Virus record (IMG/VR): IMGVR_UViG_3300001460_000004
Location: 124,001 to 188,000 of that record
Direction: 5' to 3' (one strand)
Length of the DNA stretch: 64,000 nucleotides
The notes under the pieces are model-generated. The model was not told where the DNA came from. It saw only the letters and a list, made by a program, of their open reading frames with translations, and did no database searches. Below, in pieces: positions 2,665 through 57,249 of the stretch (the stretch's first letter is position 1; each line of letters opens with the position of its first letter). The position numbers were made by a program, and so were the translations under genes.

Positions 2665-2670
2665 AAACTC

Positions 2671-11747: not shown

Positions 11748-11750
11748 CTT

Positions 11751-35803: not shown

Positions 35804-36392
35804 TAGTAATTTCTTTTGCTCCGTGCATTTTTAAATATTTTCCTGCACATTCTTCAGTATCAGGATGCTGTTCGCATACTATAACAGGTTTGTACTTTAG
35901 TATAGTATTCATTGCACCTTGCAATACTTGTAACTCGTGCCTTTCACAATCAATTTTTAATAAACCAAACTTTGGTAAATTTAAATCATCCATTCTTTTG
36001 ATTGATATATCACCTTCACCAACTTCACTAACAAAACTATTACCAGTATTGTTGCTATCGTACTCCATTATTACTTGACTGTTTGTATTACCTAATGCAC
36101 ATTCATTAACTTGCACTGGTAATCCTTGCACATTTAAATGTAAGCATTCATAAACTTGTTGCATTGGTTCATATGCAATGACTTGATCAAATTTTTCAAC
36201 TAAATGCACAGCCCATAAACCAACGTTTGCGCCAACATCAACTGCAAGAGAAAAATCGGTTACATACTTGTATGCTTCGTCTCTAACATCATCTTGATAT
36301 TGCGGCGGCCCGCCATTTCTTACACGTTTTTTAATTAAACGTTCAAAATGATTATCACTATCTGGCATCCAGTAATTAAAAACTTGTTTCAC
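35772..36392 (-). CDS. FkbM-family methyltransferase
   Basis: VDVGANVG, YEP, LKIDCE..ELQVLQGA. Confidence 0.88.
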   Translation of the reverse strand: MKQVFNYWMPDSDNHFERLIKKRVRNGGPPQYQDDVRDEAYKYVTDFSLAVDVGANVGLWAVHLVEKFDQVIAYEPMQQVYECLHLNVQGLPVQVNECALGNTNSQVIMEYDSNNTGNSFVSEVGEGDISIKRMDDLNLPKFGLLKIDCERHELQVLQGAMNTILKYKPVIVCEQHPDTEECAGKYLKMHGAKEITNVRKDYIFGW

Positions 36393-37048
36393 TTTACACC
36401 TATGATTTTATTTTTACCGCCAGCGTAAGCAATTGATTGATACCCCAAAGGGCTTAATATTTCTAAGACTGTATCTTTTGAATGTCCATATCTAGCTTCA
36501 TGCCCTTTGCATTCATATAAAATTACAGGACGATGTGTTGTTATTAATTTAATACCACCTTTGATAATCAAAGGTTCATAACCTTCTGCGTCTATTTTAA
36601 TAAAGTCAACATCGGTTAGTTCAAGTGAATCAAGTGGTTTTACTGGAATATCTCCATCACTGCCTGGGGTAACATGTGTACTAAATGTTGACTTTTTTGC
36701 ATTGTAATTTAAACTTACATTTTGTTCTATTTCTCCTATGCCATGGGCATAAGTTTTGACATTGTCTAAGTTAAACTTTGCCATGTTCATTTCTAAACAC
36801 TTGTAAACCTTGGGTTCAATTTCAAATGCATGCACTTGCTGAAAGCGACGGCTCATGTGCTGACACATTAGTCCATAGTTTGCACCAATGTCAATTCCTG
36901 TACGATAGTTCTCACAAAGATCCATGGCTGTTTCAATTTGTTGTCTCTGGTAAGATTCCAACAACGGGCTACTAGTTCTTTTTAATGCCCGTATGAGTGT
37001 TTTGTCATCTTTAATAATTGTCCAACCTTGTATTACATCATGTTCCAC
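36389..37048 (-). CDS. FkbM-family methyltransferase
   Basis: IDIGANYG, FIKIDAEGYE. Confidence 0.88.
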   Translation of the reverse strand: MEHDVIQGWTIIKDDKTLIRALKRTSSPLLESYQRQQIETAMDLCENYRTGIDIGANYGLMCQHMSRRFQQVHAFEIEPKVYKCLEMNMAKFNLDNVKTYAHGIGEIEQNVSLNYNAKKSTFSTHVTPGSDGDIPVKPLDSLELTDVDFIKIDAEGYEPLIIKGGIKLITTHRPVILYECKGHEARYGHSKDTVLEILSPLGYQSIAYAGGKNKIIGVK

Positions 37049-37806
37049 TATGTACGCCTCTCAATGTCGTCTTCTTGTAATGTAGTGCCCATCCAAACTT
37101 CTATCACTTTGGCAGGCACATCTCCTATATTAGTGGCTTTATGCCACGTCATGGTGGGGATATCAATACTCTCACTTGGACCATATGTTTTTGATAGTTT
37201 ATCACCATTGGGGTATTCTAGTTCCATTTTAACTAGTCCATCAACTACACACCAATGCTCACTACGAACAAAATGACGCTGATCACTTAGTGATTTGTTG
37301 ACATCAAAGCATAGTTCTTTAACTTGCCATGTGTCTTGCTTGTCAAGTATAGTATAGTTTCCCCAGAGTCTTTGTGTTTTTGGTTTTTCCCAATTTTTTA
37401 ATATCCAGCTGCTGCTATTCTTCTTATCTTCGCCACCTACACCAAATGCAAATTCAACATCATCAAAAACCATTTCCGGAATGTTTTCTGCACTGCGATC
37501 GCCACCGTTTGCAAAGATAACATGTGAATCTGGATACATCATTTTTACATTTTTGATTGCTTCAATTGCAGTATCATCGTCGTCTGTAAAACACAAACAA
37601 TGATCTACAATACCTAACTCTTGAATTATGTTGACTCGTTCTGGTCCAGGCATAAAGGCCCTACCTTTTTTACGTGTAAGCCAGGCATCGCTGTTTACAC
37701 CAACAACCAACTTATTTCCTAATTTTTTTGCTGCCTTAAAATAGGCAATGTGTCCGCTATGGAGTGGATCAAATCCACCAGTGACTAGTACTATTTTTTC
37801 TTGCAT
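37048..37806 (-). CDS. Cytidylyltransferase-like (RfaE/TagD-type) domain fused to a mannose-6-P isomerase-type cupin
   Basis: GGFDPLHSGH (HxGH), NSDAWL.RKKG, ANGGDR, NSSS; C-terminal RLWG, SDQRH..RSEHW, EDDIER. Confidence 0.88.
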   Translation of the reverse strand: MQEKIVLVTGGFDPLHSGHIAYFKAAKKLGNKLVVGVNSDAWLTRKKGRAFMPGPERVNIIQELGIVDHCLCFTDDDDTAIEAIKNVKMMYPDSHVIFANGGDRSAENIPEMVFDDVEFAFGVGGEDKKNSSSWILKNWEKPKTQRLWGNYTILDKQDTWQVKELCFDVNKSLSDQRHFVRSEHWCVVDGLVKMELEYPNGDKLSKTYGPSESIDIPTMTWHKATNIGDVPAKVIEVWMGTTLQEDDIERRT

Positions 37807-37864
37807 AAAGTTATTTAGTGACGTTTAAATGCAGTAAATATGTTTTTAGAAGGCAAAAATTTAT

Positions 37865-38584
37865 ATGGATAATACAGTAAATTGTGCATGTTTGATACAT
37901 GGCGATGTGTATGAATGGCAGTATGTAGAAAAGTTATACAGTATGTTGAAAAGAAACATCAGCTATCCAGTAAGATTGCATGTGTTTACTGAGCCTGAAA
38001 GACCAGTGCCAGCTGAATTTGTTAAACATGACTTAACTATATGGGATGGAGTTAGCGGTCCTAAAAAAAGCTGGTGGTACAAAGTCCAAATGTTTGATAG
38101 AAAACATTTTGCAGGAAAACTTTTGTATTTTGATTTAGATGTTGTTATTACTGGAAACTTAGACTGGATACTAGCATGCAATCCTCAATATCTTTGGGCT
38201 ATACGAGATTTCAAACATTTATGGAGACCACAATGGAATGGTATAAACAGTAGTATGATGTACTGGGATACAATGCAATATCATCGAGTATGGAAAAACT
38301 TTAGCAAAGGTGATATAAAAGAAATTATGCGTAGGTTTCCTGGTGATCAAGATTATATTAGTAATACTGTTGACTTTAAACAATTTAGATTTTTTGATCC
38401 TCAAAAGATAGTAAGCTGGCGCTGGCAAGCAAAAGATGGAGGAATGAGTTTTGAGGGTAGCAGACATTATGCTCGTCCTGANGCAGGCACAGTTTTACCT
38501 CAAGGGTGTAATGTAATGATATTTCACGGATCGCCTAAACCACATCAAGTAAACGATCCTATAATAAATGGTTATTGGGTATGA
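37865..38584 (+). CDS. GT-A glycosyltransferase-like protein (ambiguous base N at 38482)
   Basis: WWYK, YFDLDVVI, NSSMM, GDQDYI, FHGSPKP. Confidence 0.8.
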   Translation: MDNTVNCACLIHGDVYEWQYVEKLYSMLKRNISYPVRLHVFTEPERPVPAEFVKHDLTIWDGVSGPKKSWWYKVQMFDRKHFAGKLLYFDLDVVITGNLDWILACNPQYLWAIRDFKHLWRPQWNGINSSMMYWDTMQYHRVWKNFSKGDIKEIMRRFPGDQDYISNTVDFKQFRFFDPQKIVSWRWQAKDGGMSFEGSRHYARPXAGTVLPQGCNVMIFHGSPKPHQVNDPIINGYWV

Positions 38585-43737: not shown

Positions 43738-45200
43738 AACAAGCAACTCTCATAGTACGAGACGAAGTTAATATTAAATTTGAAGGCTTAGATTTAGATA
43801 CTCGCAAAAAACTGCATGCTAAATTTAAATTTCCTGTACCTTATGCAAGATATTTACCAGCAGTTAAACTTGGACGATGGGATGGCAAGATTGCATTTTT
43901 TCAAATGGGAGGTAGTAGCTATGTAAACTTATTGCCACAAATACTTCCGATGGTAGTTGACGAAGGATATGACATAGAATTAAGTGACCTGCGTGAATAT
44001 ACAACCACATTTGATTTTGACAAAGTAACGAGTAATTCATTTGCACATATCAAATGGCCAGAAAAACATCCAGCTGCTGGCGAAAGTATAACATTACGTG
44101 ATTATCAAGTTGAAATAGTTAATAAGTTTTTAGAAAACCCACAATGTTTACAGGAAATTGCAACCGGCGCAGGTAAAACTATTATGACTGCGGCACTGAG
44201 TCAACGCATTGAATCATATGGACGTAGTATTGTTATTGTTCCCAATAAAAGTTTAGTAACACAAACTGAAAAAGATTACATCAACATGGGATTGGATGTG
44301 GGTGTATTTTTTGGTGACAGAAAAGAATTTGGTAAAACACATACAATTTGTACTTGGCAAAGTTTGAATATACTGTTAAAGAATACAAAAAGTTTTGAAG
44401 CCGAAGTTACAATACAAGATTTTTTAGAAGATGTTGTTTGTGTTATAGTTGATGAAGTACATATGGCTAAAGCAGACGCACTAAAAACACTATTAACTGG
44501 TGTAATGAGTCAAATACCTATACGTTGGGGATTAACAGGAACAATACCCAAGGAAGCATTTGAATTTGAAGCATTACATGTAAGTATAGGCCCAGTTGAA
44601 AGTCAACTGAGTGCTAGTGAATTACAAGAGAGAGGTGTATTGGCAAATTGCCATGTGAATATTGTACAATTAATTGACCAGGTAGAATATAATAATTATC
44701 AAAGTGAATTAAAATACTTATTGGAAGAAACAGGTAGACTGGATACTATAAGCGAACTTGTTAGTCGAGTTAACTTAACTGGAAATACATTAGTATTAGT
44801 TGATAGAATTAGTGCAGGCACAGCATTACAACAAAGATTGCCTGACAGTGTTTTTATTAGTGGTGGTACTAAATCAGGTGAAAGGCAAGATGAGTATGAT
44901 GAAGTGGCTACTGCCCAAGGTAAAATTATTATTGCCACTTATGGGGTGGCTGCTGTGGGGATTAATATTCCCCGTATCTTTAATTTGGTTTTGTTGGAAC
45001 CTGGAAAAAGTTTTGTTCGAGTTATCCAAAGTATCGGGCGTGGGATAAGAAAAGCAGAGGACAAAGATCATGTGCAAATATGGGATATCACTAGTACATG
45101 TAAATACGCCAAACGACATTTAACAAAAAGAAAAACATTTTACAAAGAGGCAAATTATCCCTTTAGTATTGAAAAATTAGATTGGATGAAAATTAAATGA
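43734..45200 (+). CDS. uvsW: SF2 DNA helicase (UvsW-like)
   Basis: LRDYQ, ATGAGKT, DEVH, GLTGT, QSIGRGIR. Confidence 0.9.
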   Translation: MKQATLIVRDEVNIKFEGLDLDTRKKLHAKFKFPVPYARYLPAVKLGRWDGKIAFFQMGGSSYVNLLPQILPMVVDEGYDIELSDLREYTTTFDFDKVTSNSFAHIKWPEKHPAAGESITLRDYQVEIVNKFLENPQCLQEIATGAGKTIMTAALSQRIESYGRSIVIVPNKSLVTQTEKDYINMGLDVGVFFGDRKEFGKTHTICTWQSLNILLKNTKSFEAEVTIQDFLEDVVCVIVDEVHMAKADALKTLLTGVMSQIPIRWGLTGTIPKEAFEFEALHVSIGPVESQLSASELQERGVLANCHVNIVQLIDQVEYNNYQSELKYLLEETGRLDTISELVSRVNLTGNTLVLVDRISAGTALQQRLPDSVFISGGTKSGERQDEYDEVATAQGKIIIATYGVAAVGINIPRIFNLVLLEPGKSFVRVIQSIGRGIRKAEDKDHVQIWDITSTCKYAKRHLTKRKTFYKEANYPFSIEKLDWMKIK

Positions 45201-45213
45201 TAAGAGACTTAAA

Positions 45214-45717
45214 ATGAAAATACTACAACTTGATACAAATAGATCATACAACTTAGAAACACTGCCAGATGAAATTGGTGATTTACGTTTTGCAATATTT
45301 GACAATAGTGATCCTACTAATCCAGATTATTTCTTTATACCTTTAATTTACTTAGAGTCTTTTAGTAGCCCTGCATTGGTGTTACGCATTGGAGAACATA
45401 CAGTAAAAATGCCAATGGATTGGCAACTTTTAATTGGTGAACATGATACTGGAGATCTTGAAGTATTGCCATTGACCAGTTTAAACGATCGAGGATTTAG
45501 TGCATTTAAATTTAATCCATTAACTGATTTTCGACCCGAGTTTTACCCTGTAGAAGTAATTGATGTCTATCAAGATGTTACATGGTATGCGCCTAAACTT
45601 AAAAACGGACAATTACTTTGTGTGCCACTTAGTGACGACCCAAAGCCAGAATGTGTATACTTTGTTAAGGATGTAAACCGCAACAGTGAAATTGTTGATT
45701 ATAACAAGGCTTGGTAA
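45214..45717 (+). CDS. Hypothetical beta-rich protein
   Basis: 167-aa ORF in the replication operon. Confidence 0.7.
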   Translation: MKILQLDTNRSYNLETLPDEIGDLRFAIFDNSDPTNPDYFFIPLIYLESFSSPALVLRIGEHTVKMPMDWQLLIGEHDTGDLEVLPLTSLNDRGFSAFKFNPLTDFRPEFYPVEVIDVYQDVTWYAPKLKNGQLLCVPLSDDPKPECVYFVKDVNRNSEIVDYNKAW

Positions 45718-46041: not shown

Positions 46042-46493
46042 GTGAAAAACTAAACATAGCAAATGAAATGCGATGTGTGGATCAAAAAGATCGAGCCTTC
46101 TATGACAGTTTGACTGACGAAGAAAGAAAAAAGTTTTCAAACTTTCTTATGATACGGTGGAGTAGTTGTGTTAGCGGTGGTCGAGAAATGCAAGAGTACT
46201 ATGTACAAAGTTGCAATCATTTTTTAAACAAACATTTTTTTACTATTAACAAACATCCTAAACTACAATGGTTATGTGCTACAGCTATTAGTCCAGGAAT
46301 GGGAACGCATCGACACAATTGGATAAGCCCTAAAAAGAAAAATAAAGGAACTGATGCAAAGGTTCGCAAAATACTTTTACAAGAATTTCCTAATACAAAG
46401 TCTGATGACTTAGATGTACTATTAAAAATAAACAATTTAAAAGATGTACGAGCGTTTTTAAAAGAACGAGGGCATGATTCTAAAAGTCAGTAA
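46038..46493 (+). CDS. Possible clamp-loader small subunit (gp62-like)
   Basis: FLMIRWSS...N...HPKLQW...RHNWI pattern and size resemble gp62; weak. Confidence 0.45.
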   Translation: MSEKLNIANEMRCVDQKDRAFYDSLTDEERKKFSNFLMIRWSSCVSGGREMQEYYVQSCNHFLNKHFFTINKHPKLQWLCATAISPGMGTHRHNWISPKKKNKGTDAKVRKILLQEFPNTKSDDLDVLLKINNLKDVRAFLKERGHDSKSQ

Positions 46494-47220
46494 TATTGTA
46501 TTCAAACCCTTTATTACGTATGCGTTCTAATACAGTATCAAATACAGTACCATCATCCCCAATAGATATTAGTATTACATTAGGAGATTGGTAAGTTAAT
46601 CCGGTTAAACGCCCGTCCTTTAAGGCACAATTTATTAATTGATGATCATGTGGACCAAACCAAAATTGATTTTGTATTTCTTCTTCAGAATTGGCTATTA
46701 TCTCTAACCGTTTTCCACTAGTTGCATGTGGTAAAAGTGATCGGCAGTGCAAGTGTATCCGACTTTCAGTTCCATAATTTTGTGCAGTATGTGTTAAGCC
46801 AGTGTCCATTAAACTCCAAACACCGTTAACAGGCATATGGTGTATAGTTTGATTATCAAAGTCCATCATAACAGCTAGTGGATTTGTAGTAATAGCTAAG
46901 TGATACCGATCATCTTGATCACTGTGGGCACCGTAATACCTACGTGGATCTAGTTTTCTTAAATAGGCACCACCAACTGGTCCTAATAAATTTAATGCAT
47001 CTCCAACAGGAGTATTTTCAAATTCTGGTAACAACACATATGGATCGTTTACATTTAAATTGGCTCCTGGTTTGACAACTGCATCGCTACCATCTGGGGC
47101 AGTGTTTACTTTGTATGCCCATCCATTGTCTTTACCATTTGCCCATGGCATATTTAACACTTGCTCTATGAGCAAAGCTGTGTTAATATTAGCTAAGTGT
47201 GTTAGAGGTGTGAGTAGCAT
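46480..47220 (-). CDS. 2OG-Fe(II)/cupin oxygenase (Asp/Asn beta-hydroxylase-like); start revised to 47220
   Basis: HSD..RYHL...HTAQN...RIHL facial-triad pattern; TAAGTA-N5-ATG at 47220. Confidence 0.7.
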   Translation of the reverse strand: MLLTPLTHLANINTALLIEQVLNMPWANGKDNGWAYKVNTAPDGSDAVVKPGANLNVNDPYVLLPEFENTPVGDALNLLGPVGGAYLRKLDPRRYYGAHSDQDDRYHLAITTNPLAVMMDFDNQTIHHMPVNGVWSLMDTGLTHTAQNYGTESRIHLHCRSLLPHATSGKRLEIIANSEEEIQNQFWFGPHDHQLINCALKDGRLTGLTYQSPNVILISIGDDGTVFDTVLERIRNKGFEYNITDF

Positions 47221-47238
47221 GTTAGTACTTATTAAGAA

Positions 47239-47913
47239 ATGAAATACAAGTGTAAATATTGCAAAAAAGAATTTCAAAGGGAGAATACTCTTGCAGTGCA
47301 TGTGTGCGAAAAGAAACGTAGATATTTAAATCGTAACGAACCTGGGGTATTAATTGGCTACAAGGCATATCTACGTTTCTATGAAATAACACAGGGCAGT
47401 AAAAAAACAAAAACATATGAAGAATTTAGTAACACTGCATATTACAGAGCATTTGTAAAGTTTGGTTATTCTTGCAGAGACATTAGATGTGTTAACATTG
47501 TACAGTTTACAGAATGGCTAATCAAACATAATAAAAAATTAGACAATTGGTGCAGTGACCGATTGTATACTGAATTTCTTGAGGTGTACTTAACAGTAGA
47601 AAGTGTAAACGATGCACTCACTCGAGCAATTGAAGAAAGCATACGCTGGAATGAAAAAACTGGTAATCCAACACATGATTATTTGCGTTATGGAAATATA
47701 AATGAATTGTGTTATGCAGTTACAACAGGTAGAATAAGTGGATGGGTGTTGTATAACTGTAATAGCGGCCAGGAGTTGTTGACTAAGTTAAATAAAGAAC
47801 AAATTGAAATGCTTTGGCCATGGATTACTAGTGATATTTGGGCTAAAAAGTTTAAAGAGTATCCAGAAGATATGAAATATGCAAAACACATACTTAAAAC
47901 AGCAGGTTGGTAA
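47239..47913 (+). CDS. Hypothetical protein with N-terminal C2H2/C2HC-type zinc finger
   Basis: YKCKYCKKEFQRENTLAVHVC. Confidence 0.75.
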   Translation: MKYKCKYCKKEFQRENTLAVHVCEKKRRYLNRNEPGVLIGYKAYLRFYEITQGSKKTKTYEEFSNTAYYRAFVKFGYSCRDIRCVNIVQFTEWLIKHNKKLDNWCSDRLYTEFLEVYLTVESVNDALTRAIEESIRWNEKTGNPTHDYLRYGNINELCYAVTTGRISGWVLYNCNSGQELLTKLNKEQIEMLWPWITSDIWAKKFKEYPEDMKYAKHILKTAGW

Positions 47914-48899
47914 TGATACTAATTGATTTTCCAGGTGGTGCACACGGCAACTATGTTGAATACATTTGCAATAGATTTCTAGCCGGAGTAAAAACCAATC
48001 CTAGTCCTTTTAAAAGCAGTGGTGTGAGTCATGCCAAAGAATACTATAGTCCAATTAAATTTGAGGCTAAACATTATTTTCAATTTGAACCCAAAAGTGT
48101 GCTAGGTAGTACCCTAATTTCAATACAAGTAAAACAGCAACATTTGATGCAATTAATAGCGATCAATTTTTTACGTGCAGGCGAAGGAAATATTGATGTA
48201 AGAAAATTAGAAGATACACTGTATGATAGGTTAAAAGTTACCAACACTGGAATGATTGATAGCATACGCAAGAATTATATCAACCAAAGTATACTTGGAT
48301 ACAAAGATATCAAGGATCCTAAGTGGCCCAATTGTGATAGTATAGAAGAATATCATCAATTACCACAGTACATTAAAAAAGAATTAACTGAACTACACAA
48401 CTTTGAATTTTGGGAGTTTGATGAAAACAACCCTTATTGTCCACGATGGATAATGAGAGATTATTTTTATCAAGGATTTATGGCCGAAGAAAACAGCGGT
48501 TTTTGGCAGTTTTGTTTAACACAAGAACGTGTGCGTCAAACAGCCCAACAAAGTTTGAGCATTGATTTTATGGATTTGTATAATATAGATAGTTTCACAA
48601 ATATTGTACAGCAAATTGCTAACTTTACTGGGTATACATTTGAAGAGACACAAGAGTTTAGAAACATACATCAAACATTTTTAAATAACCAACCTTTTAA
48701 AAACAGCTACAATTTTTGTAGTATGTTAATTACCGATATTATTAATAACCAAATTGATAAATTACCAGAACTTGATGTCTTGCAAGAAGGTTATATCTGT
48801 GCTAAACTATGTAAACATTATGACACCACTGTAGATTTAAGCGATGCCAGAGACTGGTTTAAAACATCAATATTACTTAAAGGATTTGTAAATGATTAA
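47907..48899 (+). CDS. Hypothetical P-loop/sulfotransferase-like protein with an inserted DPxWP module
   Basis: DFPGGAHGNY; YKDIKDPKWPNC...LPQYIKKEL. Confidence 0.6.
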   Translation: MVMILIDFPGGAHGNYVEYICNRFLAGVKTNPSPFKSSGVSHAKEYYSPIKFEAKHYFQFEPKSVLGSTLISIQVKQQHLMQLIAINFLRAGEGNIDVRKLEDTLYDRLKVTNTGMIDSIRKNYINQSILGYKDIKDPKWPNCDSIEEYHQLPQYIKKELTELHNFEFWEFDENNPYCPRWIMRDYFYQGFMAEENSGFWQFCLTQERVRQTAQQSLSIDFMDLYNIDSFTNIVQQIANFTGYTFEETQEFRNIHQTFLNNQPFKNSYNFCSMLITDIINNQIDKLPELDVLQEGYICAKLCKHYDTTVDLSDARDWFKTSILLKGFVND

Positions 48900-49173
48900 G
48901 CCAGTGATACAGTTTTTTAAAGAAAGCTATAGGCTTTCACCGCTTGCATATTATTGCGAATTAGCAGAAACTATATTATTAGTTTCTGCAAGTGCAATTC
49001 TTACATTAACAGTACTGGATCCTGCAACAAAGATTTTTATTCCGTTGTACCTGGCAGGCAGTATACTTGGAGTAGTTAGCACAGTAATTCGCAAAGCAGG
49101 CTTTGCTATTGTATTGTGTGGGTGGTTTGTTGTAATGAATAGTATTGCAATGGTACAACTTTTTATACTATAG
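48892..49173 (+). CDS. Small membrane protein (about 3 TM segments)
   Basis: Strongly hydrophobic 93-aa ORF. Confidence 0.7.
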   Translation: MIKPVIQFFKESYRLSPLAYYCELAETILLVSASAILTLTVLDPATKIFIPLYLAGSILGVVSTVIRKAGFAIVLCGWFVVMNSIAMVQLFIL

Positions 49174-49180
49174 GTGAATA

Positions 49181-49744
49181 ATGGATATTGATATTGACTT
49201 TGCAGATCGTAAACATGTTTTAGATAGTCTAAAACATGTGCCAGCAAGAATGGACACTGTAAAAGGAGTGCGTAATCACAATAGTGGTGTGTACTTTACT
49301 GAAATTCCATATGATAGTAAACATCAATGTGCTAGTATTGATTATGAAACTGCCGAAGAACGTGGGTATTTTAAAATTGATTTTTTAAATATGCATGTAT
49401 ACAATTTAATTAAAGATACTAATCATTACACAGCAATGCAAAACGCACAAGTACCGTGGGAACGATTATGGGAAGATGTTGAATTTGCTCAACTGTTGGT
49501 TCATGTTGGTAATCATACCAACTTGTTGCAATCAATGCGTCCGGACAGTATAACTAGAATGGCTGCATTTATAAGTGTAATACGCCCTGGTAAAGCACAT
49601 TTACAAAATAAACCCTGGGATCAAGTCTTTGACAGTGTATTTGACGGTGACAACAGCAAAGGGTTTATCTTTAAAAAGAGTCATGCAATCAGTTATGCAG
49701 CTTTGGTAGCATTGCATATGAATTTAATCCACTTTGCGGACTAG
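49181..49744 (+). CDS. Miniature DnaE-like (family C DNA polymerase) catalytic core
   Basis: DIDID, HNSGVY, KIDFL, IRPG, FKKSHAISY in the same order as the DnaE palm/fingers motifs. Confidence 0.8.
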   Translation: MDIDIDFADRKHVLDSLKHVPARMDTVKGVRNHNSGVYFTEIPYDSKHQCASIDYETAEERGYFKIDFLNMHVYNLIKDTNHYTAMQNAQVPWERLWEDVEFAQLLVHVGNHTNLLQSMRPDSITRMAAFISVIRPGKAHLQNKPWDQVFDSVFDGDNSKGFIFKKSHAISYAALVALHMNLIHFAD

Positions 49745-50101
49745 CATAATACTACGGCGCCTACCTTTGTTACGTTGTATATTCTTTAAACTACACACAG
49801 GACCATGAATTATTTGTAGATGTTTGTTGCTAAAAGTTTTTAAACAAAACTTAAATGGTTCCCAATCCTTCTTTAAAAACAAGTTTATTGGTATACTTCG
49901 ATTGCTCTCCCACCACCATTGATGTGCTAATTCTAAGTATTCTTCCTTGAGTCCTCTTTCGATTACATCACCAAAGTCATATATGCTTGTTAGCGTATCG
50001 CCTCGATTTTGTATTACGCCTATGTGTTCATTTCCCACATAGTCGACAAGGCTCAAGAAGGGGTAATTTTGGTTTAGTTTGTTAAAGACATTGTTTACCA
50101 T
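49724..50101 (-). CDS. Hypothetical protein
   Basis: 125-aa ORF (YPFLS...WWWESNRSIPINLF). Confidence 0.7.
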   Translation of the reverse strand: MVNNVFNKLNQNYPFLSLVDYVGNEHIGVIQNRGDTLTSIYDFGDVIERGLKEEYLELAHQWWWESNRSIPINLFLKKDWEPFKFCLKTFSNKHLQIIHGPVCSLKNIQRNKGRRRSIMLVRKVD

Positions 50102-50123
50102 AAATATTATAAGGAGTTCCTAG

Positions 50124-50903
50124 ATGTATGCAGCTACAGTATATTTATACCAACAAATTCAGAAGGTCTTACTTGTGGACAACTCTGATGGAAGTTACTT
50201 TGACCGGAGGTGGAGTGAAGTGTATTCAAAAAAATTAAAATTAAATTTAGGAGTCGATAATGTTATTTTGTTTGCATTTGAAAATCAAGATCAAAAACCA
50301 GTAAACATTTCAGGCAGTACATTCACATTTCGTCTCATAAGCCAAAATGGTGAACAGTTACTATTAGCCAAAGAGTTAGTTAGTCTCAATAATGCCAAAG
50401 GACGTGCTAAAGTTACCATTACCAGTGCTGACATAAACACATTATTTGAGCAACCTGCTAGTTGGAGTATTGAGCAAGCAAGTGGTAATCTTGAAACCGC
50501 AGTATTAGTAGATGCATACAGTGGTGCTCGCGGAGACATTGAAGTTAATAACAGTGTGTATCCTGCATTTGTGCCCAGCAAAACATTAACTATTCCTGCA
50601 CAAGCGCCAGACAGTACAATTTATTATACTAGCACAGTAACAACAGAAGGTGTAGACCAAACAACATTTGTAGTAACTCCTAATGGATTCACAGGAGAGA
50701 TAAGAGTTAATGGTGCAGTTGATACTAGCGGTGATTGGTATGATATTACTTTTGTAGACTTTTCAACACAAGCAACTGTTGACGAAGTGCAACTTGTCAA
50801 TAGCAGTGATTTAATTGGACTCAACGTCCCAGGATATCATCCCTATTTGCGTTTAGAATTTGTTATAAGTGCAGGAAGCATTAGCAACATACTTTATCGA
50901 TAA
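50124..50903 (+). CDS. Putative structural beta-sandwich protein
   Basis: TAAATA and AGGAG upstream; NQDQKPVNISG..F.F Ig-like pattern. Confidence 0.6.
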   Translation: MYAATVYLYQQIQKVLLVDNSDGSYFDRRWSEVYSKKLKLNLGVDNVILFAFENQDQKPVNISGSTFTFRLISQNGEQLLLAKELVSLNNAKGRAKVTITSADINTLFEQPASWSIEQASGNLETAVLVDAYSGARGDIEVNNSVYPAFVPSKTLTIPAQAPDSTIYYTSTVTTEGVDQTTFVVTPNGFTGEIRVNGAVDTSGDWYDITFVDFSTQATVDEVQLVNSSDLIGLNVPGYHPYLRLEFVISAGSISNILYR

Positions 50904-51607
50904 TGAAAAAAATTGTAAGTTTTGGAGATAGCTATGTTTGGGGCGATGAATTAATTGATCCTAAATTAGCAACACAACCTGATGCACATCCAGTGTTGAT
51001 TGAAAATACCAAATACAGAGAACAAAACTGTTATACGGGTTTGTTGGCCAACAGCTATGGTATTCCATACGAAAACTTTGGAATACCAGGTGGAAGTTTA
51101 CAAAGCACAGTTTGGACATATCTTTGGTGGCTTGATAATGAAAAACTACCCATTGAAGATTGTTTAGTTCTAGTTGGACTTACTGAACCTGGTAGGCACA
51201 GTTTTTATAATCCAAAGCATCGTGTGTATCCAAATGATACAGATTGGAATCGTTTTGTACACAGTAGCTGGATACATAGTAACAATAGCAGTGACAATGA
51301 ACAGTGGCATGAACTTGTTAAGTTACACACAGTATTGACAGATTGTCAAGCGTTAAGAGATCTAACACTACATACCACTCAATTGTTTTTTGAAAACACA
51401 CAACATTCACATCCTGTGGTACAATTTTTTACATTGAATCACACAGCTACTAAACCATACTCCACATTGTGGAATTCTACACAAAGCCTACGTGACTTAA
51501 CCCTGTCACCAAAATTACAAAAACCAAATGGTCATCCCAACGAAATTGGACATAAAATTATAAAAGAAGTCTTGCAAGAATACATATACCGTGCTATACT
51601 AAGTTAA
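50903..51607 (+). CDS. SGNH/GDSL-like protein
   Basis: FGDSYVWG, NFGIPGGS, GHPNEIGH. Confidence 0.7.
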   Translation: MKKIVSFGDSYVWGDELIDPKLATQPDAHPVLIENTKYREQNCYTGLLANSYGIPYENFGIPGGSLQSTVWTYLWWLDNEKLPIEDCLVLVGLTEPGRHSFYNPKHRVYPNDTDWNRFVHSSWIHSNNSSDNEQWHELVKLHTVLTDCQALRDLTLHTTQLFFENTQHSHPVVQFFTLNHTATKPYSTLWNSTQSLRDLTLSPKLQKPNGHPNEIGHKIIKEVLQEYIYRAILS

Positions 51608-52560
51608 TGTTAAATGCAATTGAATTATTTCCAACTGGTAAACAAACCAGTAGTGGCTGGTACAGCTACAATGCTCCTTGTTGTGTACACAATGGAGAAA
51701 ATGCCGATCGACGCAAGCGTGGTGGACTAAAGCCACGTGACAATGGTTGGAGTTATCATTGTTTTAATTGTGGATATACTGCTAGTTTTACAATTGGTAG
51801 ACAAGTAAGTTTTAAAGCAAGACGCTTACTGTCCTGGTTTGGTGTTGATAGTTCTGATATTGATAGATTAAATTTAGAAAGTCTACGCCAACGCAGTTTA
51901 TTGGATGCAATTGATCAACAACCCAAACGTAAAATAACATTTGATTTTGCAGAAAAACAATTGCCAGATGGGTGCTCTAACCCAACAGAACAAACAAATG
52001 AATACATAATTAATCGTGGCATACATCAAGTGGGTTTTCCTTTTTTAAGTTATAAAAGAGGACCAAGACTTGGTATTGTAACTCCGTTTACGTACAACGA
52101 CACGATAGTAGGAAGTAGTATACGTTTCCTAGATGATCGTATACCTAAGTATATTAACGATAAACCACAAGGATATGTTTTTGGTATAGATTTGCAACGT
52201 AATAACTGGGAACATGTATTTGTAGTTGAAGGTGTATTTGATGCGTTGTCAATACAAGGTGTTGCTGTGTTACATGACGATGTAAATGATGCACAAGCTG
52301 AACTCATCAACAATTTAAGACGTAGTGTAACAGTAATACCTGACCAAGACAACGCAGGTGTAAAACTAATAGACCGTGCAGTTGAACTAGGTTGGGCTGT
52401 AAGTATACCAAAGTGGCCCAACAACGATATCAAAGACGTAAATGACGCAGTTGTAAAATATGGAATGACAGCAACAATGATTTTTATAATGCAAGCACGT
52501 AATACAAGTAAAATTAAAATTGAATTAGCAAAAAAAGCATTGGTTAGGAAGTTAAAATGA
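51607..52560 (+). CDS. DNA primase (zinc finger + TOPRIM; gp61-like)
   Basis: PCC...YHCFNC, PKY, VEGVFDA, PDQD, KDVND. Confidence 0.9.
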   Translation: MLNAIELFPTGKQTSSGWYSYNAPCCVHNGENADRRKRGGLKPRDNGWSYHCFNCGYTASFTIGRQVSFKARRLLSWFGVDSSDIDRLNLESLRQRSLLDAIDQQPKRKITFDFAEKQLPDGCSNPTEQTNEYIINRGIHQVGFPFLSYKRGPRLGIVTPFTYNDTIVGSSIRFLDDRIPKYINDKPQGYVFGIDLQRNNWEHVFVVEGVFDALSIQGVAVLHDDVNDAQAELINNLRRSVTVIPDQDNAGVKLIDRAVELGWAVSIPKWPNNDIKDVNDAVVKYGMTATMIFIMQARNTSKIKIELAKKALVRKLK

Positions 52561-52588
52561 TAAACAACTGTACGCAGGAGAACACTTA

Positions 52589-53977
52589 ATGCTTAAAGAA
52601 TACAATCTCGATGTACAGAAATTGTTTTTAGAAATGATGTTAGAAGATGCACAAAGTTATGTGCGTATTCAAAACATATTCAATCCAGAAAACTTTGATC
52701 GAAGCTTGATCGAAGTAGCTAAGTTCATTAAAGATCATTGTGATGATTACAAAACAATGCCAGAGATAGCTCAGATAAACTCCAGCACTGGCGTGACACT
52801 AAGTCCAGTACCTGATCTCAACAGTGGACACTTTGAATGGTTTATGACCGAGTTTGAAAACTTTACTAAAAGACAAGAACTTGAACGAGCAATACTAAAA
52901 GCTGCAGACTTATTAGAAAAAGGTACGTATGAGCCAGTTGAAAAACTTATCAAAGATGCAGTACAAATAAGTTTGACACGTGATTTAGGAATAAATTATT
53001 TTGATGATCCACGTGCCAGGCTAACTGCTTTAAAAAACAACAATGGTCAAAACAGCACAGGCTGGAAAGCACTTGATAAAATGTTGTATGGTGGGTTTAA
53101 CAGAGGCGAACTACAAATATTTGCAGGCGGATCGGGCTCGGGCAAGAGTTTGGTTATGCAAAATTTAGCAGTTAACTGGATACAAGCAGGACTCAATGGT
53201 GTGTACATTACACTAGAATTAAGTGAAGGCTTAACTGCAATGCGTGTTGATAGCATGTTAACGGGCACCAGTAGCAAAGACATTTTTCGAGAGTTAGATA
53301 ATGTTGAAATGAAAATTAAAATGGCTGGCAAAGCAAGTGGGCAACTACAAGTCAAGTACATGCCAGCACAAAGCAATGTAAATGACATTAGGGCGTATTT
53401 AAAAGAATTAGAAATACAAAGTGGTTACAAAACAGACTTTTTGTTAGTTGACTATCTAGACTTATTGATGCCGGTTAGTGCAAAAGTTAGCCCAAATGAT
53501 CAATTTATTAAAGACAAGTATGTAAGCGAAGAACTACGCAATTTAGCAAAAGAGTTAAATGTATTGTTTGTAACAGCATCGCAATTAAATCGTAGTGCAG
53601 TTGAAGAAATTGAATTCGACCACAGTCATATTGCTGGTGGTATTAGTAAAATTAATACAGCAGATAATGTGTTTGGTATATTTACTAGCAGGGCAATGCG
53701 TGAACGTGGGCGATATCAGATACAAGCAATGAAAACACGTAGTAGTAGTGGAGTTGGACAAAAAATTGATTTAGATTTTGATATAGCTAGTTTAAGAATT
53801 ATGGATTGCGATGAAGATGCACAGCAAAGCAGTAGCGGGCATGGTAACATATACGAAAGCATTAAAGCAACAACAAATGTTAACGACACAAGTAGTCCAG
53901 TTACCGAAACTCGAAAAGTTGAAGCAGATGTGCAAAGTAGTAAACTTAAAGGCTTGCTAGCATCAATGAAATCATGA
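52589..53977 (+). CDS. Replicative DnaB-like helicase (gp41-like)
   Basis: GGSGSGKS, TLEL, VDYLDL, TASQLNR, TADNV, KTR. Confidence 0.92.
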   Translation: MLKEYNLDVQKLFLEMMLEDAQSYVRIQNIFNPENFDRSLIEVAKFIKDHCDDYKTMPEIAQINSSTGVTLSPVPDLNSGHFEWFMTEFENFTKRQELERAILKAADLLEKGTYEPVEKLIKDAVQISLTRDLGINYFDDPRARLTALKNNNGQNSTGWKALDKMLYGGFNRGELQIFAGGSGSGKSLVMQNLAVNWIQAGLNGVYITLELSEGLTAMRVDSMLTGTSSKDIFRELDNVEMKIKMAGKASGQLQVKYMPAQSNVNDIRAYLKELEIQSGYKTDFLLVDYLDLLMPVSAKVSPNDQFIKDKYVSEELRNLAKELNVLFVTASQLNRSAVEEIEFDHSHIAGGISKINTADNVFGIFTSRAMRERGRYQIQAMKTRSSSGVGQKIDLDFDIASLRIMDCDEDAQQSSSGHGNIYESIKATTNVNDTSSPVTETRKVEADVQSSKLKGLLASMKS

Positions 53978-54831
53978 TATTACCTAAGTTAGTTATTCCC
54001 AGTAGAATTAATCAACATTGGATAGAGAGTGGAATGGACTCGTACGATCTCTGTGTTGACAAAAAACATTTTAAAAAATACCCACACACTGTAAAATATT
54101 ATTACAACAGCCGTGGTTTTCGTGACCGTGAATGGCCTAACTCAGTAGATGATTGCATATGGTGTGTTGGTGATAGTTTTACAGTAGGGTTAGGGGTACC
54201 ACATGAACACAGCTGGAGTTATATACTAGGGGAACGTTTGAATAAACGCACAATAAATGTTAGCATGGATGGTGCTAGCAACACATGGATACGCAGGCAA
54301 GCTGTACAAATACTAGAACTACAACCCAAGTTACTAATACTACAATGGAGTTACATCACTAGACGAGAAGCAACTATGGATCAATTGTGGCAAAAGTTCT
54401 ACGATAGTGTGAGAGATCCAAGTTGGCCAGAATGTAAAACCTATGCACAAATTTCAGAGTTACCCGAGTGGATAAGAACTGAACTTGAAACAGTGCATAA
54501 CTGTAGCAATGTTATGGAAAACATCGACGATACTAATAAGCGTCTACGTTATACTCATACCAGCGACGAACAAGACAAAGAACATTTATACGATCAAATT
54601 ACACAAGTTGAAAGTGCAGTAGATTCAACTTTATTAATACATAGTTTTGTGCCTCATTTTAGTCCAAATGGATATGCTGTTCCCATTCCTAAAAGTATAC
54701 AACCAAGACATATACCTGAAATAACTAAATTAGATCTTGCTCGGGACGGTCATCACTATGATCGGTTAACTGCTGAACATTTTGTTGATCAGTTGGAGAA
54801 TTTAATAACTGAGAACAGTGCCATTTCCTAA
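53974..54831 (+). CDS. SGNH-like protein with an inserted DPxWP module
   Basis: YNSRGFRD, VGDSFTVG, NVSMDGASN, RDGHH; FYDSVRDPSWPEC insertion. Confidence 0.7.
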   Translation: MILPKLVIPSRINQHWIESGMDSYDLCVDKKHFKKYPHTVKYYYNSRGFRDREWPNSVDDCIWCVGDSFTVGLGVPHEHSWSYILGERLNKRTINVSMDGASNTWIRRQAVQILELQPKLLILQWSYITRREATMDQLWQKFYDSVRDPSWPECKTYAQISELPEWIRTELETVHNCSNVMENIDDTNKRLRYTHTSDEQDKEHLYDQITQVESAVDSTLLIHSFVPHFSPNGYAVPIPKSIQPRHIPEITKLDLARDGHHYDRLTAEHFVDQLENLITENSAIS

Positions 54832-55936
54832 GTTCTTCGGATTCTTTTACAGCACTATCATCGCTGTTGTATGGCTTACCTATCCCGTTTTCTGCAACCC
54901 ATTCGTTATACCAACCAGCAACTTCATCAAAGTTTTTAATCATTAATTTTTTTTCAGCCATAGTTTGTAATTTTATAGGCATTCCGGTTACTAATGCACC
55001 ACGATCGGTTAGCTCTTTGATTGCTAGAAAACTTTTGGTGTATGCTTTGCTATTGTTTAACAAGTACTGTTGATCAGTATTGCTTAAACTTTGAATAATA
55101 CCATTACGAGTGCTAGTATCATCTGGCACACTTAATTGAAAGTTTGGTTTGTTACTTTTATCTTCTAACAGCAATGTTGGTTCTACTTGTTTACTAAGTC
55201 CACTTATATCTCCCAGCAAGTAATGACATCGATTCCAGTCTTCAAATTCAATGCCAAATATATCATTCCAGTTACGTTTTTCTTGATGATTAAAGCAAGG
55301 TAATTCTAAACAAAATTCTTCAGCTCGAGGCATGTCTTGCTCGTAAACAAAGTAACTACCAACAGTAAAATATTGATCTACCCACTCTAAGTATTTTGCA
55401 TAGTCTTGAAGATATTTTATTAAACTCATGCGAGGAACTTTAATTTTTATACTGTAAAGGTCTTCGTAGTAATCTGCTTTATCTAATGGGTTGTAAACAT
55501 TAAGTTTGTCACTGCGGGTTACAATAACCCAACTTAGTGCATGTTCAAACAAATTTTCTCTTTGGGCACTAATAATATAAAAATGTTCATTTAGATATTT
55601 GTAAAATTCAACTTGTTGTGCAATTGGGTCATTGCGATTGCGAATATGATATTGTGCTAATCTGCTAGTTTTATAATGATCTACACTGCTTAGTAAATCT
55701 GTTATTTCGCTAAGTGTTTGATGATATCCTCTAGGTTGGTCAATTCTTTCTGGCTTTCCAAGAATTTCACTATTGTATTCTGGGCTAAAGTATCGTATAA
55801 TACCATTAGTAAGTTCGTGTAAGTTTATTACTGGACGATCGTATTTGTGTGCATTCATTAAAATAGTCAGTAATCTTTGCAAAAAAGTACTGCCAACTCG
55901 ATCTGGAGTTAATATTAATACATTGTTATGGTTCAT
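54725..55936 (-). CDS. Sulfotransferase-like (Stf0-like) protein
   Basis: LTPDRVGSTFL, LHE, RENLFEHALS, YE. Confidence 0.55.
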   Translation of the reverse strand: MNHNNVLILTPDRVGSTFLQRLLTILMNAHKYDRPVINLHELTNGIIRYFSPEYNSEILGKPERIDQPRGYHQTLSEITDLLSSVDHYKTSRLAQYHIRNRNDPIAQQVEFYKYLNEHFYIISAQRENLFEHALSWVIVTRSDKLNVYNPLDKADYYEDLYSIKIKVPRMSLIKYLQDYAKYLEWVDQYFTVGSYFVYEQDMPRAEEFCLELPCFNHQEKRNWNDIFGIEFEDWNRCHYLLGDISGLSKQVEPTLLLEDKSNKPNFQLSVPDDTSTRNGIIQSLSNTDQQYLLNNSKAYTKSFLAIKELTDRGALVTGMPIKLQTMAEKKLMIKNFDEVAGWYNEWVAENGIGKPYNSDDSAVKESEELRKWHCSQLLNSPTDQQNVQQLTDHSDDRPEQDLI

Positions 55937-55986: not shown

Positions 55987-57249
55987 ATGAGCAAACTATT
56001 CCCTGGAAAAGAAATATTCCCTGTTAACTCGCCAACTGCTTGTATGTTAAAATGGAGTTGGAGTACAATAAACCTGCAGGATGCATACACTAGTAGTTGT
56101 CACCGGGTAGAAGGTGAATATTTTGATATTGAACAATTTGATAATTTTCATAACTTACCTGAGAAAATCCTTGCAAGAGAAAAAATGCAACAAGGTATTT
56201 GGCCAGGCAAAGGATGCGAGTATTGCGAACGTGTTGAATGTGCCGGCGGCATCAGTGACAGGACAATGACACTAGAAAGGCAACACACCCGAGATAAAAT
56301 ACCACCTGAGTTGCATGACAACCCCAATGCCACACATGTAACACCTACAATACTCGAAGTGTACTTTAATAATACGTGTAATATGAGTTGTGTGTATTGT
56401 GCACCAAGTGTAAGTAGTCAAATAAATGCAGAAGTTACAAAGAATGGTGGTTTCAGTGTAGGTAACATGCATGTTGAACCTTTTGTTACTAACAACACAA
56501 GGCAAAAACTATTAGTAGAAAAACTTTGGAAGTATCTAAGTACTAACAATCGATATCAACACATACGGCACTTTAATATATTGGGTGGTGAACCATTATT
56601 ACAACAAGAGTTTGATCAGTGCATACAATTTTGGAATGACCATCCCAATCCTAGTTTAACTATTAATTTAGTGAGCAATTTAAACTTTGATCCTAAATTT
56701 TTTAAAAACAGAATAAACCAACTGCGCCAGTTAGTTGATGAATATAAAATATTTCAAGTTGAAATTACTGCAAGTTTAGATTGTTTAGGACCAGAGCAAG
56801 AATATGTTCGCCGTGGACTAAAACTACAAGACTATTGGGTACCAAACTTTGAATTTTTATTACAACAAGATTGGATCAAACCCAGTGTACACAGTTGTAT
56901 AAGTAGTCTCACAATTAAAACATTTGATCAATTAGTCAACAAACTTAACAGTTGGAACCACCAATACAATACTACAATAGATCATTCGTTTGATGTAGTA
57001 GTGGGGAAAAGTTGGCAAGAAATTGCTATGCATCCTATGTTTTTTGGACCTGGCGTATTTGACGAAGATTTTGATCGAATAATTCAAGCTATGCCACAAG
57101 GACACAGTCGACAACACATGCAAGGAATTGCTGATAGTATTCAAGCCGCCCAACGTGATGAAGTTAAAATAAACCAGTTAAAACAGTATTTACGGATACT
57201 AGACACTAGAAGAAATACAGATTATACAGAATTATTTCCTTGGCTTTAG
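55987..57249 (+). CDS. Radical SAM protein with N-terminal twitch/SPASM-like Cys cluster
   Basis: CMLKW...SCH...GCEYC; CNMSCVYC; GGEP; SLD..QEYVR. Confidence 0.9.
   Translation: MSKLFPGKEIFPVNSPTACMLKWSWSTINLQDAYTSSCHRVEGEYFDIEQFDNFHNLPEKILAREKMQQGIWPGKGCEYCERVECAGGISDRTMTLERQHTRDKIPPELHDNPNATHVTPTILEVYFNNTCNMSCVYCAPSVSSQINAEVTKNGGFSVGNMHVEPFVTNNTRQKLLVEKLWKYLSTNNRYQHIRHFNILGGEPLLQQEFDQCIQFWNDHPNPSLTINLVSNLNFDPKFFKNRINQLRQLVDEYKIFQVEITASLDCLGPEQEYVRRGLKLQDYWVPNFEFLLQQDWIKPSVHSCISSLTIKTFDQLVNKLNSWNHQYNTTIDHSFDVVVGKSWQEIAMHPMFFGPGVFDEDFDRIIQAMPQGHSRQHMQGIADSIQAAQRDEVKINQLKQYLRILDTRRNTDYTELFPWL

Follow-up and report, generated by a model that had tools for sequence, protein, structure and literature searches.

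A mobile mini-domain, found so far only in viral sequence, in unrelated tailoring enzymes of large aquatic phages

How can two proteins that appear to have nothing else in common, encoded a few kilobases apart in the genome of a large virus, come to share one short, gap-free stretch of sequence? The question arose from a 64,000-nucleotide stretch of DNA (positions 124,001 to 188,000 of the IMG/VR record IMGVR_UViG_3300001460_000004; hereafter, the window), for which a sequence-only reading had noted that a module of about 35 residues bearing a DPxWP motif occurs in both a P-loop-like and an SGNH-like protein. That reading inferred a portable targeting or scaffolding mini-domain, which recruits diverse modifying enzymes to a common substrate or complex and links a dispersed toolkit into one system. 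The features considered here, in window coordinates, are the following.

47913 to 48899, plus strand: host gene 1 (P0001, 328-330 aa), with a model that resembles a sulfotransferase or small kinase. The open reading frame begins with a TTG at 47907, but the homologues start at MILIDF, and so the ATG at 47913 is the likely start.
48300 to 48401, plus strand: module copy 1, residues 132-165 of P0001 (profile match 131-167, 60.9 bits).
53974 to 54831, plus strand: host gene 2 (P0002, 285 aa), a predicted SGNH/GDSL-fold hydrolase or acyltransferase.
54400 to 54501, plus strand: module copy 2, residues 143-176 of P0002 (profile match 140-177, 69.1 bits), inserted just after the WSYxxRRE strand and loop of the SGNH core (site A).
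54725 to 55936, minus strand: P0004 (403 aa), the sulfotransferase-like neighbor of the SGNH gene, which carries no module but belongs to a family in which one orthologue does.

The shared stretch proved to be real and lies where it had been placed. BLASTP of the two proteins returned a single gap-free match of 34 residues, with 13 identities and 22 positives (E 3e-8), while every other segment had E >= 0.88, and DPxWP occurs only at these two places in all six frames of the 230-kb genome. Both families keep the same columns invariant (Y, W-P, L-P) and the same Glu conserved; in the P0001 family the invariant residues are Y132, W140, P141, L152, P153, E159, and H164. Comparison of the two family alignments with hhalign matched only 43 columns around the module (probability 97.2, E 2.8e-11). 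Hence, this is true local homology, neither chance nor full-length homology. Moreover, a profile built on the module found a third, more diverged copy in the same genome but outside the window, at genome positions 49217-49903 on the minus strand (33 bits, E 2.6e-9).

Regarding the hosts, P0002 belongs to a large family of more than 1374 clusters, and its model (pLDDT 88.8, about 95 in the module region) has the three-layer alpha/beta/alpha SGNH fold, with Foldseek matches to TesA, EstA, CE2/CE3 esterases, and others (59 hits at E <= 1e-3; TesA and other GDSL esterases at E 3e-6, probability 1.00). Block I, with the nucleophile Ser, is represented by G66-D67-S68, invariant in 28 family members; the Gly of block II corresponds to the invariant G100; and D258 and H261 of block V are invariant within LARDGHHYD. 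However, the GxND of block III, with its oxyanion-hole Asn, is absent: the strand at this position ends in the invariant W125-S126 and R130-R131-E132, and N103 lies in the block II region instead. In comparison with E. coli TesA, P0002 has about 60 extra N-terminal residues and the module inserted after the third core strand, and its Pfam match to PF13472 is weak, at 22.7 bits against a cutoff of 32.9.

P0001 is a member of a rare family, with 5 clusters in 5.8 billion proteins, and its description as P-loop-like is only weakly backed. There is no Walker A motif (GxxxxGK[ST]), and the invariant loop F8-P-G-G11-A12-H13-G14-N15 (PGGxHGN), which follows strand 1, resembles the PKxGTT-type 5'-phosphosulfate-binding loop of sulfotransferases only in position. 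No Pfam or NCBIfam model matched the protein, and Foldseek found nothing at E <= 1e-3 in the PDB and no significant named fold among AFDB clusters. With a model of only middling quality (pLDDT 69.8), the best VIA-align matches were TPST1, a tyrosylprotein sulfotransferase (Z 7.8), Stf9/Stf1 (7.6), and shikimate kinases (7.0-7.5), values within the range that is common for unrelated models. On these models the two hosts have different folds, SGNH for P0002 and, tentatively, sulfotransferase/kinase-like for P0001.

The module itself is an acidic mini-domain of about 37 residues (36-39 positions, mean net charge -3.4), with a consensus of roughly FYNxIKDPSWPxCx(8)LPxxIQxECxxVH, in which Y, W-P, L-P, I, and E are 94-100% conserved across about 150 very diverged copies. 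It is predicted as the end of a helix, a DPxWP loop (of 10 residues in the P0001 model), and two short helices. No Pfam, NCBIfam, or PHROG model covers it, and isolated modules gave no Pfam match even at E <= 10. Searches of P0001 and P0002 with tblastn against 50,697 GenBank phage records found nothing, an ESM Atlas search with the module part gave only one unnamed viral cluster (score 0.76) and structural rows with TM <= 0.51, which are uninformative, and literature searches for the motif and for the enzyme combination in jumbo phages returned nothing relevant.

The two conditions that would have overturned the sequence-only reading, full-length homology of the two proteins or a lack of other enzyme partners, were both examined, and neither holds. 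The profile found the module in 887 protein clusters at E <= 1e-3, and in 95 at E <= 1e-10, among 1.84 billion representatives; with the module masked, the best 148 hits fall into at least 16 unrelated multi-member host families. Positions are 72 internal, 30 C-terminal, 28 N-terminal, and 18 in short proteins, with 6 doubled. Annotated partners are all enzymes, namely Radical_SAM (13), MTS (8), Methyltransf_25 (6), Eco57I-type (4), Amidohydro_2 (2), DUF6492 (2), Asp_Arg_Hydrox, and GDSL, although most host families have no annotation and this statement rests on the annotated minority. In addition, stand-alone module ORFs lie beside radical SAM genes, and one natural stand-alone ORF is a gene of 106 aa.

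The mobility of the module goes further than had been proposed. Within one SGNH family, related proteins carry it at site A, at a second site (site B), or not at all. A tree of 52 SGNH proteins with the module masked needs 7 state changes, but its backbone is unresolved and well-supported branches force only one per state, so that no number beyond "at least two" can be given. Two more families show presence or absence, a 379-aa family and that of P0004, which has a weak PF00685 match at its N-terminus. The pair formed by the SGNH and P0004-like genes is conserved in related phages with and without modules, and the P0004 orthologue at 6440-7729 of one such record (G001) has a clean module-bearing insertion in the inter-domain linker (57 bits, residues 271-306).

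At the genome level, related jumbo-phage records, collected with the SGNH alignment, hold either several copies or none. Of 12 records whose SGNH has the module, eleven have matches at E <= 0.01, 37 in all, with 3-6 in each of the six records that are at least 92% complete and 1-3 in fragments; the twelfth (G012) is 58% complete and its diverged site-B copy falls below threshold. Eleven records with a module-less SGNH (1.83 Mb, two of them 100% complete) have none, and both kinds share 110-160 genes with this genome. One complete module-bearing genome is 347 kb long, with terminal repeats. The pattern may partly reflect phylogeny, given the unresolved SGNH backbone. As for host range, one degenerate DNA pattern gave 62 of 62 true copies in viral contigs and 0 of 17 in prokaryotic genomes.

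Conservation acts on the protein and not on the DNA. The two window copies are 53% identical in DNA, with codon positions 1, 2, and 3 identical at 19, 21, and 14 of 34, and the module is about as conserved as the catalytic domains, indicating purifying selection at the protein level.

Taken together, the interpretation offered by the sequence-only reading is partly supported: its structural half strongly so, its functional half not demonstrated. What the data establish is the homology of the module between otherwise unrelated hosts, its terminal and internal positions, its presence at two sites or absence within single enzyme families, the protein-level selection, and the several-or-none distribution among related genomes. 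What we infer, with no more than even confidence, is that a mini-domain folding on its own has been grafted repeatedly onto, and also into, unrelated small-molecule or polymer tailoring enzymes, adding one common property to catalysts that use different cofactors (SAM, Fe/2-oxoglutarate, possibly PAPS, or none). This property would most likely be recognition of a common phage-specific substrate or docking to a common partner protein, so that the dispersed enzymes would belong to one modification system and act on one target, candidates being phage DNA, a virion protein or glycan, or a precursor peptide. A search found no RNA runs that contain the region. The enzyme-only partners, the distribution per genome, and the restriction to viruses fit this view. 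However, no partner or common substrate was found, a predicted complex of P0001 with P0002 gave no support (score 0.00, which is not evidence either way), and modules within one genome are no more alike than those between genomes (0.327 against 0.326), with no sign of co-evolution with a genome-specific receptor.

Among the systems of known function, the dockerins of cellulosomal enzymes (Pfam Dockerin_1), which bind cohesins on a scaffoldin, are also small conserved modules appended to many unrelated enzymes, present in many copies or none per genome and, in our reading, giving different catalysts one common address. Dockerins are duplicated calcium-binding loop-helix motifs of about 60-70 aa, extracellular and usually C-terminal, whereas the present module is shorter, has no calcium-loop pattern and no Pfam match, and is often internal, even inside a catalytic fold; no cohesin-like receptor has been found. 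RiPP recognition elements (PqqD-like RRE domains) are likewise portable, fused at either end of radical SAM and other tailoring enzymes or encoded as small separate ORFs beside them, and the partner classes overlap (radical SAM/SPASM, methyltransferase, Asp hydroxylase, possibly sulfotransferase). An RRE is a winged helix-turn-helix of about 85-90 aa with a three-stranded sheet that pairs with the leader peptide, while this module is less than half that size, is predicted as loop plus helices only in both models, and has no PqqD match, and no precursor peptide was identified. In the reading proposed here, the module would work like a dockerin or an RRE without being a member of either family.

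A bolder form of the same view, possible but unlikely on present evidence, is that the module is the address tag of an undiscovered phage-encoded multi-enzyme modification machine, a dockerin-like or leader-recognition-like handle that would bring radical SAM enzymes, methyltransferases, hydroxylases, esterases, and sulfotransferase-like enzymes to one virus-specific polymer, such as hypermodified DNA, a virion glycan or protein, or a phage-made peptide. About 900 otherwise unannotated protein clusters would then be components of one pathway class, with the module's receptor as the key missing gene.

Of the alternatives, the one that survives best, though unlikely, is that the module is a structural or regulatory cap that stabilizes, gates, or regulates each enzyme individually, for example as a lid over the active site or as a redox or metal sensor through its Cys/His, with no shared target. 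Its insertion inside the SGNH catalytic fold, right after the block III strand, the frequency of Cys at two positions and of His (80%, 56%, and 55%), and the lack of within-genome co-evolution are consistent with this. However, one small module would have to serve the same role, also from terminal positions, in folds as different as radical SAM, Rossmann methyltransferase, cupin hydroxylase, amidohydrolase, and SGNH; stand-alone ORFs exist; and the several-or-none distribution is not expected for a per-enzyme cap. The two Cys are not co-conserved (both in 62, first only in 61, second only in 24, neither in 7), which argues against an obligate metal site or disulfide, and the metal-site or disulfide idea was rejected.

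A selfish in-frame insertion without function for the host protein, which would spread within a genome into tolerant surface loops and termini like the Rickettsia palindromic elements, appears very unlikely. Those elements are also short (about 35-50 aa), occur at various surface positions of unrelated proteins, and are found within some genomes only, and the different sites in one family, the insertions in linkers, the several-or-none pattern, and the restriction to one kind of genome would agree with such an origin. But they are DNA repeats with conserved, palindromic nucleotide sequence and weak peptide constraint, whereas here there is no DNA-level repeat, the third codon positions are the least conserved, the peptide is strongly constrained, and annotated hosts are only enzymes, never capsid, tail, or replication proteins. 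Copies within a genome are as diverged as copies between genomes, so there has been no recent burst, although an ancient selfish origin followed by domestication is not excluded.

Equally doubtful is a localization or packaging tag, directing enzymes into the capsid for injection, or to a phage-made compartment or the replication machinery. The module is found only in viral sequence, is portable and independent of position, and the window copies lie among replication genes (primase at 51607-52560, helicase at 52589-53977). Yet no virion or compartment component was linked to it, known capsid-targeting signals are short N-terminal peptides rather than internal folded modules, and insertion inside the SGNH core is awkward for a tag; this reading is a special case of partner docking and cannot be separated from it with these data. 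Chance or compositional similarity, or distant full-length homology, for which only the original short pairwise match taken alone could speak, is refuted by the pairwise and profile-profile comparisons, the different folds, and the hundreds of independent occurrences with the same invariant columns.

Large aquatic phages carry dozens of tailoring enzymes with unknown targets, and a short, highly recognizable module that links at least 16 unrelated host families offers a concrete handle on them, as a search key to collect the whole toolkit, and as bait for the common substrate or receptor, with natural orthologues that have the module, lack it, or carry it at another site as ready-made controls. 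It is also an unusually clean case of a mini-domain inserted at different loops of one catalytic fold, which is of interest for domain evolution and enzyme engineering, and it deserves a family entry in the domain databases. A first, crude comparison of gene content, with too few genomes and too much phylogenetic confounding to name a receptor (4 module-bearing and 2 module-free), yielded 21 genes specific to the module-bearing genomes, including ThyX, a UDP-sugar dehydrogenase cluster, a methyltransferase, and small ORFs.

The virus record, of which the window covers bases 124001-188000, is a single sequence of 230,036 bp with 36% G+C. The features needed first are the two genes that share the stretch under study, together with the stretch in each of them.

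47907-48899 (+), ORF giving P0001, of 330 aa when read from the TTG; its homologues begin at MILIDF, so the ATG at 47913 is the likelier start
48300-48401, the shared stretch in P0001, residues 132-165
53974-54831 (+), ORF giving P0002, of 285 aa
54400-54501, the shared stretch in P0002, residues 143-176

The observation made in the sequence-only reading, namely that these two stretches align without gaps, is confirmed. BLASTP of the two proteins gives one gap-free match of 34 residues, with 13 identical and 22 similar, at E 3e-8, and nothing else below E 0.88, while DPxWP occurs nowhere else in the six frames of the genome.

The homology is local and does not extend over the full length of the proteins. 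P0001 belongs to a rare family of 5 clusters among 5.8 billion proteins, and P0002 to a large one of more than 1374 clusters. In both alignments the same columns are invariant (Y, then W-P, then L-P), and the same Glu is conserved, being invariant in the family of P0001 and nearly so in that of P0002. When the two family profiles are compared, 43 columns around the module are matched and nothing else, with probability 97.2 and E 2.8e-11. In addition, a profile of the module scanned over all six frames of the genome finds a third, more diverged copy outside the window.

Genome 49217-49903 (-), P0130, 229 aa, with the module at 33 bits and E 2.6e-9

The small family of P0130 again matches the other two only in the module. 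Its gene lies in a cluster of radical SAM/SPASM-like, glycosyltransferase-like and amidinotransferase-like genes, next to Ser/Thr/Gly-rich fibre-like genes.

The models of the two host proteins have different folds. The AlphaFold model of P0002 is confident (pLDDT 88.8) and matches TesA and many other GDSL/SGNH esterases (Foldseek E 3e-6, probability 1.00, 59 hits at E <= 1e-3). GDS, the block II Gly and DxxH are invariant, whereas a canonical GxND block III is missing; P0002 is an SGNH-fold enzyme lacking a canonical block III. The model of P0001 is only fair (pLDDT 69.8), and Foldseek finds nothing significant for it. An exhaustive structural alignment places tyrosylprotein sulfotransferases, mycobacterial Stf sulfotransferases and shikimate/adenylate kinases on top at Z 7.0-7.8, which is suggestive but falls within the noise range of the method. 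The term "P-loop-like", used for this protein in the sequence-only reading, is therefore plausible in the sense of a sulfotransferase or small-kinase fold, although there is no Walker A motif, and P0001 is at best sulfotransferase/kinase-like. P0001 may also be a composite of two domains joined by the module, because its C-terminal half (about residues 170-310) occurs on its own in other ORFs of related phages, at 189667-190038 of contig C1 of the related record G004 and at 129931-130335 of contig C1 of the related record G001 (loci L087 and L090). The module has the same predicted secondary structure in both models, that is, the last turns of a helix carrying the Tyr, a loop of about 10 residues carrying DPxWP, and then two short helices carrying LPxxI and E...H.

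A 39-position profile built from the three families was searched against 1.84 billion representative proteins, and it finds 887 clusters at E <= 1e-3 and 95 at E <= 1e-10; two of the top 150 are repetitive false positives. Over 154 module instances in the best hits, conservation is Y 99%, W 100%, P 100%, L 100%, P 97%, I 94%, E 97%, D 87%, first Cys 80%, second Cys 56% and His 55%, and the mean net charge is -3.4. The consensus is about FYNxIKDPSWPxCx(8)LPxxIQxECxxVH. With the module masked, the top hits fall into at least 16 multi-member families that BLAST cannot connect. The module is internal in 72, C-terminal in 30, N-terminal in 28, in short proteins in 18, and doubled in 6.

Where Pfam recognises the rest of the protein, it is always an enzyme. 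Among the 145 aligned top hits, the counts are Radical_SAM 13 (one with SPASM), MTS 8, Methyltransf_25 6, Methyltransf_31 4, Eco57I-type methylase 4, Methyltransf_24 3, Amidohydro_2 2, DUF6492 2, Asp/Arg beta-hydroxylase 1 and GDSL 1. No Pfam, NCBIfam or PHROG model covers the module itself, even at E 10 on isolated modules, and full-text literature searches found no description of it.

At least two small module-only genes are complete ORFs inside contigs, of which one lies 15 bp upstream of a radical SAM gene, and the other lies after a radical SAM gene and a SegE-type homing endonuclease. On the JGI metagenome contig L204, at 2610-4821, a 298-aa radical SAM-like gene, a SegE-type GIY-YIG homing endonuclease gene, a 97-aa module-only ORF and a 159-aa ORF lie in a row, an arrangement that looks like a module-bearing radical SAM gene split by a homing endonuclease. 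The genome under study also encodes three paralogous radical SAM-like proteins (420, 445 and 477 aa), which share a CEYC/CSYC motif upstream of the CxxxCxxC cluster.

Window 55987-57249 (+), radical SAM-like paralogue
Genome 44330-45667 (locus L001 1331-2668, -), radical SAM-like paralogue
Genome 46787-48220 (locus L001 3788-5221, -), radical SAM-like paralogue

The window copy has a weak partial module-like stretch (NLPEKIL, 7.9 bits), which is not significant.

The module is also mobile inside host families, a result that goes beyond what the sequence-only reading had proposed. Eighty SGNH homologues from viral contigs fall into three states. In the first, the module sits right after the WSYxxRRE strand and loop, as in the window (site A). 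In the second there is no module, and the proteins, of 238-258 aa, are otherwise 35-40% identical end to end. In the third, the module sits about 70 residues further on, just before the LDxARDGHHYD block (site B), for example in the homologues at loci L054 (40.7 bits), L072, L077 and L042. A tree of 52 such proteins, with the module masked, needs 7 state changes, but well-supported branches do not fix the number beyond at least two. A second SGNH-like gene of the window carries no module and has no Pfam, PHROG or NCBIfam hit.

50903-51607 (+), P0003, 234 aa, with GDS near the N-terminus and a GHPNxxGH block V, directly upstream of the primase

Two further families show presence and absence of the module. 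The first is that of P0004, a sulfotransferase-like gene that forms a conserved pair with the SGNH gene in related phages.

54725-55936 (-), P0004, sulfotransferase-like

This family lacks the module in six members and has a clean module-bearing insertion in the inter-domain linker of one (G001 6440-7729, module of 57 bits at residues 271-306). The second is a 379-aa family, which has the module in two of its nine sampled members.

The replicative helicase is 48% identical to those of Pseudomonas phage PA5oct and Agrobacterium phage Atu_ph07, and the genome therefore belongs to a distant relative of those jumbo myoviruses. Related IMG/VR records of 200-520 kb share 110-160 genes with it, whether or not they have modules. 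Of the 12 records with a module-bearing SGNH, eleven have matches at E <= 0.01, 37 in all, with 3, 6, 4, 5, 3 and 3 in the six records that are at least 92% complete and 1-3 in fragments; nine of the eleven have at least two matches. The twelfth record (G012, 58% complete) shows nothing at this threshold because its site-B copy is diverged. None of the 11 records with a module-less SGNH (1.83 Mb, two of them 100% complete) has a match. At the density of non-SGNH copies seen in the first group (26 in about 3.5 Mb), about 14 would be expected in the second, a rough figure that ignores relatedness and incompleteness and is thus an indication and not a test. The P0001 family is also absent from the three module-free genomes searched for it.

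To assess the host range, one degenerate 24-base pattern for KDP[S]WP[D/E]C, present in 26 of the 148 top hits, was scanned in two collections. In IMG/VR it gave 62 loci, all 62 of which are true modules at >= 25 bits, whereas in 596 Gb of species-representative prokaryotic genomes it gave 17 loci, none of which is a module; the pattern is narrow, so rare cellular copies are not excluded. The window's own DNA recurs in marine, seawater and brine metagenomes from 18 studies.

Taken together, what the analysis shows is that a small, selected module, found only in viral sequence, has been combined many times with non-homologous tailoring enzymes, at termini, in linkers and in loops of a catalytic fold, and that it comes and goes at the level of whole genomes. 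Its function, on the other hand, is inferred. The hosts use different chemistries and cofactors, so the module is unlikely to bind a cofactor, and what they can share is a target or a meeting place. We therefore favour, with roughly even confidence, a recognition or docking role, in which the module would bind either a common phage-specific substrate or a common partner protein, so that the dispersed enzymes act together. The interpretation given in the sequence-only reading, a portable mini-domain that recruits diverse modifying enzymes to a common substrate or complex, is strongly supported as regards portability and association with diverse modifying enzymes, while its targeting function remains a reasoned but untested inference. 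In a doubly wound alpha/beta fold, site A (after the block III strand) lies on the catalytic face, which leans toward substrate recognition, although this rests on fold topology without inspection of coordinates, and the geometry of site B is ambiguous.

Hints about the target point in different directions, and none of them is established. The window copies sit among replication genes, and some hosts are Eco57I/MTS-type amino-methyltransferases, which suggests nucleic acid. The third copy sits in a sugar-enzyme cluster beside fibre genes, and a UDP-sugar dehydrogenase cluster is specific to module-bearing genomes, which suggests a glycan. Finally, radical SAM/SPASM, Asp hydroxylase and a tyrosylprotein-sulfotransferase-like fold suggest a peptide or protein. 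Genes found wholly or mostly in module-bearing genomes include the following.

Genome 203721-209858, outside the window, a cluster of genes of 117, 460, 424 (UDP-glucose/GDP-mannose dehydrogenase family), 173, 308, 426 and 191 aa
Genome 2349-3020, ThyX
Window 30744-31490, a methyltransferase

In the cluster, the 117-, 424-, 426- and 191-aa genes have homologues only in the module-bearing relatives, and the other three have only weak matches in one module-free genome; ThyX and the methyltransferase show the same pattern.

In this view, the module would work like a dockerin, in that many enzymes share one address with a genome-level all-or-none distribution, and like a RiPP recognition element, in that it is fused or stands alone beside radical SAM enzymes. 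It is a member of neither, because its size, predicted structure and sequence fail their defining features. Promiscuous accessory modules are a known class; the module described here is a new domain family, and it behaves as an unusual variant of that class.

The possibility that the module is a selfish DNA insertion was also considered. The two window copies are 53% identical in DNA, with identities at codon positions 1, 2 and 3 of 19, 21 and 14 of 34. Within each family, the module columns are about as conserved as the rest of the protein, namely 0.54 against 0.62, 0.63 against 0.61, and 0.68 against 0.68. So the constraint is on the peptide, and this is not a DNA repeat like the Rickettsia palindromic elements, even though an ancient selfish origin cannot be excluded. 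Modules of one genome are no more similar to each other than to those of other genomes. An obligate zinc site or disulfide is unlikely, since the two Cys are not co-conserved.

Upstream of P0001 lie two further genes.

47239-47913 (+), a conserved 224-aa protein with a C2H2-like CxxC...HxxC start
46480-47301 (-), a 273-aa ORF, whose syntenic homologue in a related contig has a weak Asp/Arg hydroxylase match

This synteny, from a DEAD-type helicase gene upstream through to the primase and replicative helicase, is kept in the related contigs L002 and L004. In L004, a 295-kb relative, the P0001 homologue (459 aa, with a C-terminal extension of about 130 aa) is followed directly, at 11377-12030, by a 217-aa protein with a clear Sulfotransfer_1 match, and there a radical SAM gene replaces the SGNH gene after the helicase. 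Elsewhere in the window, at 32000-38000, GC and AT skew change sign over about 6 kb (skew -0.13 to -0.15 against about +0.1 elsewhere), which is consistent with a block of genes on the minus strand.
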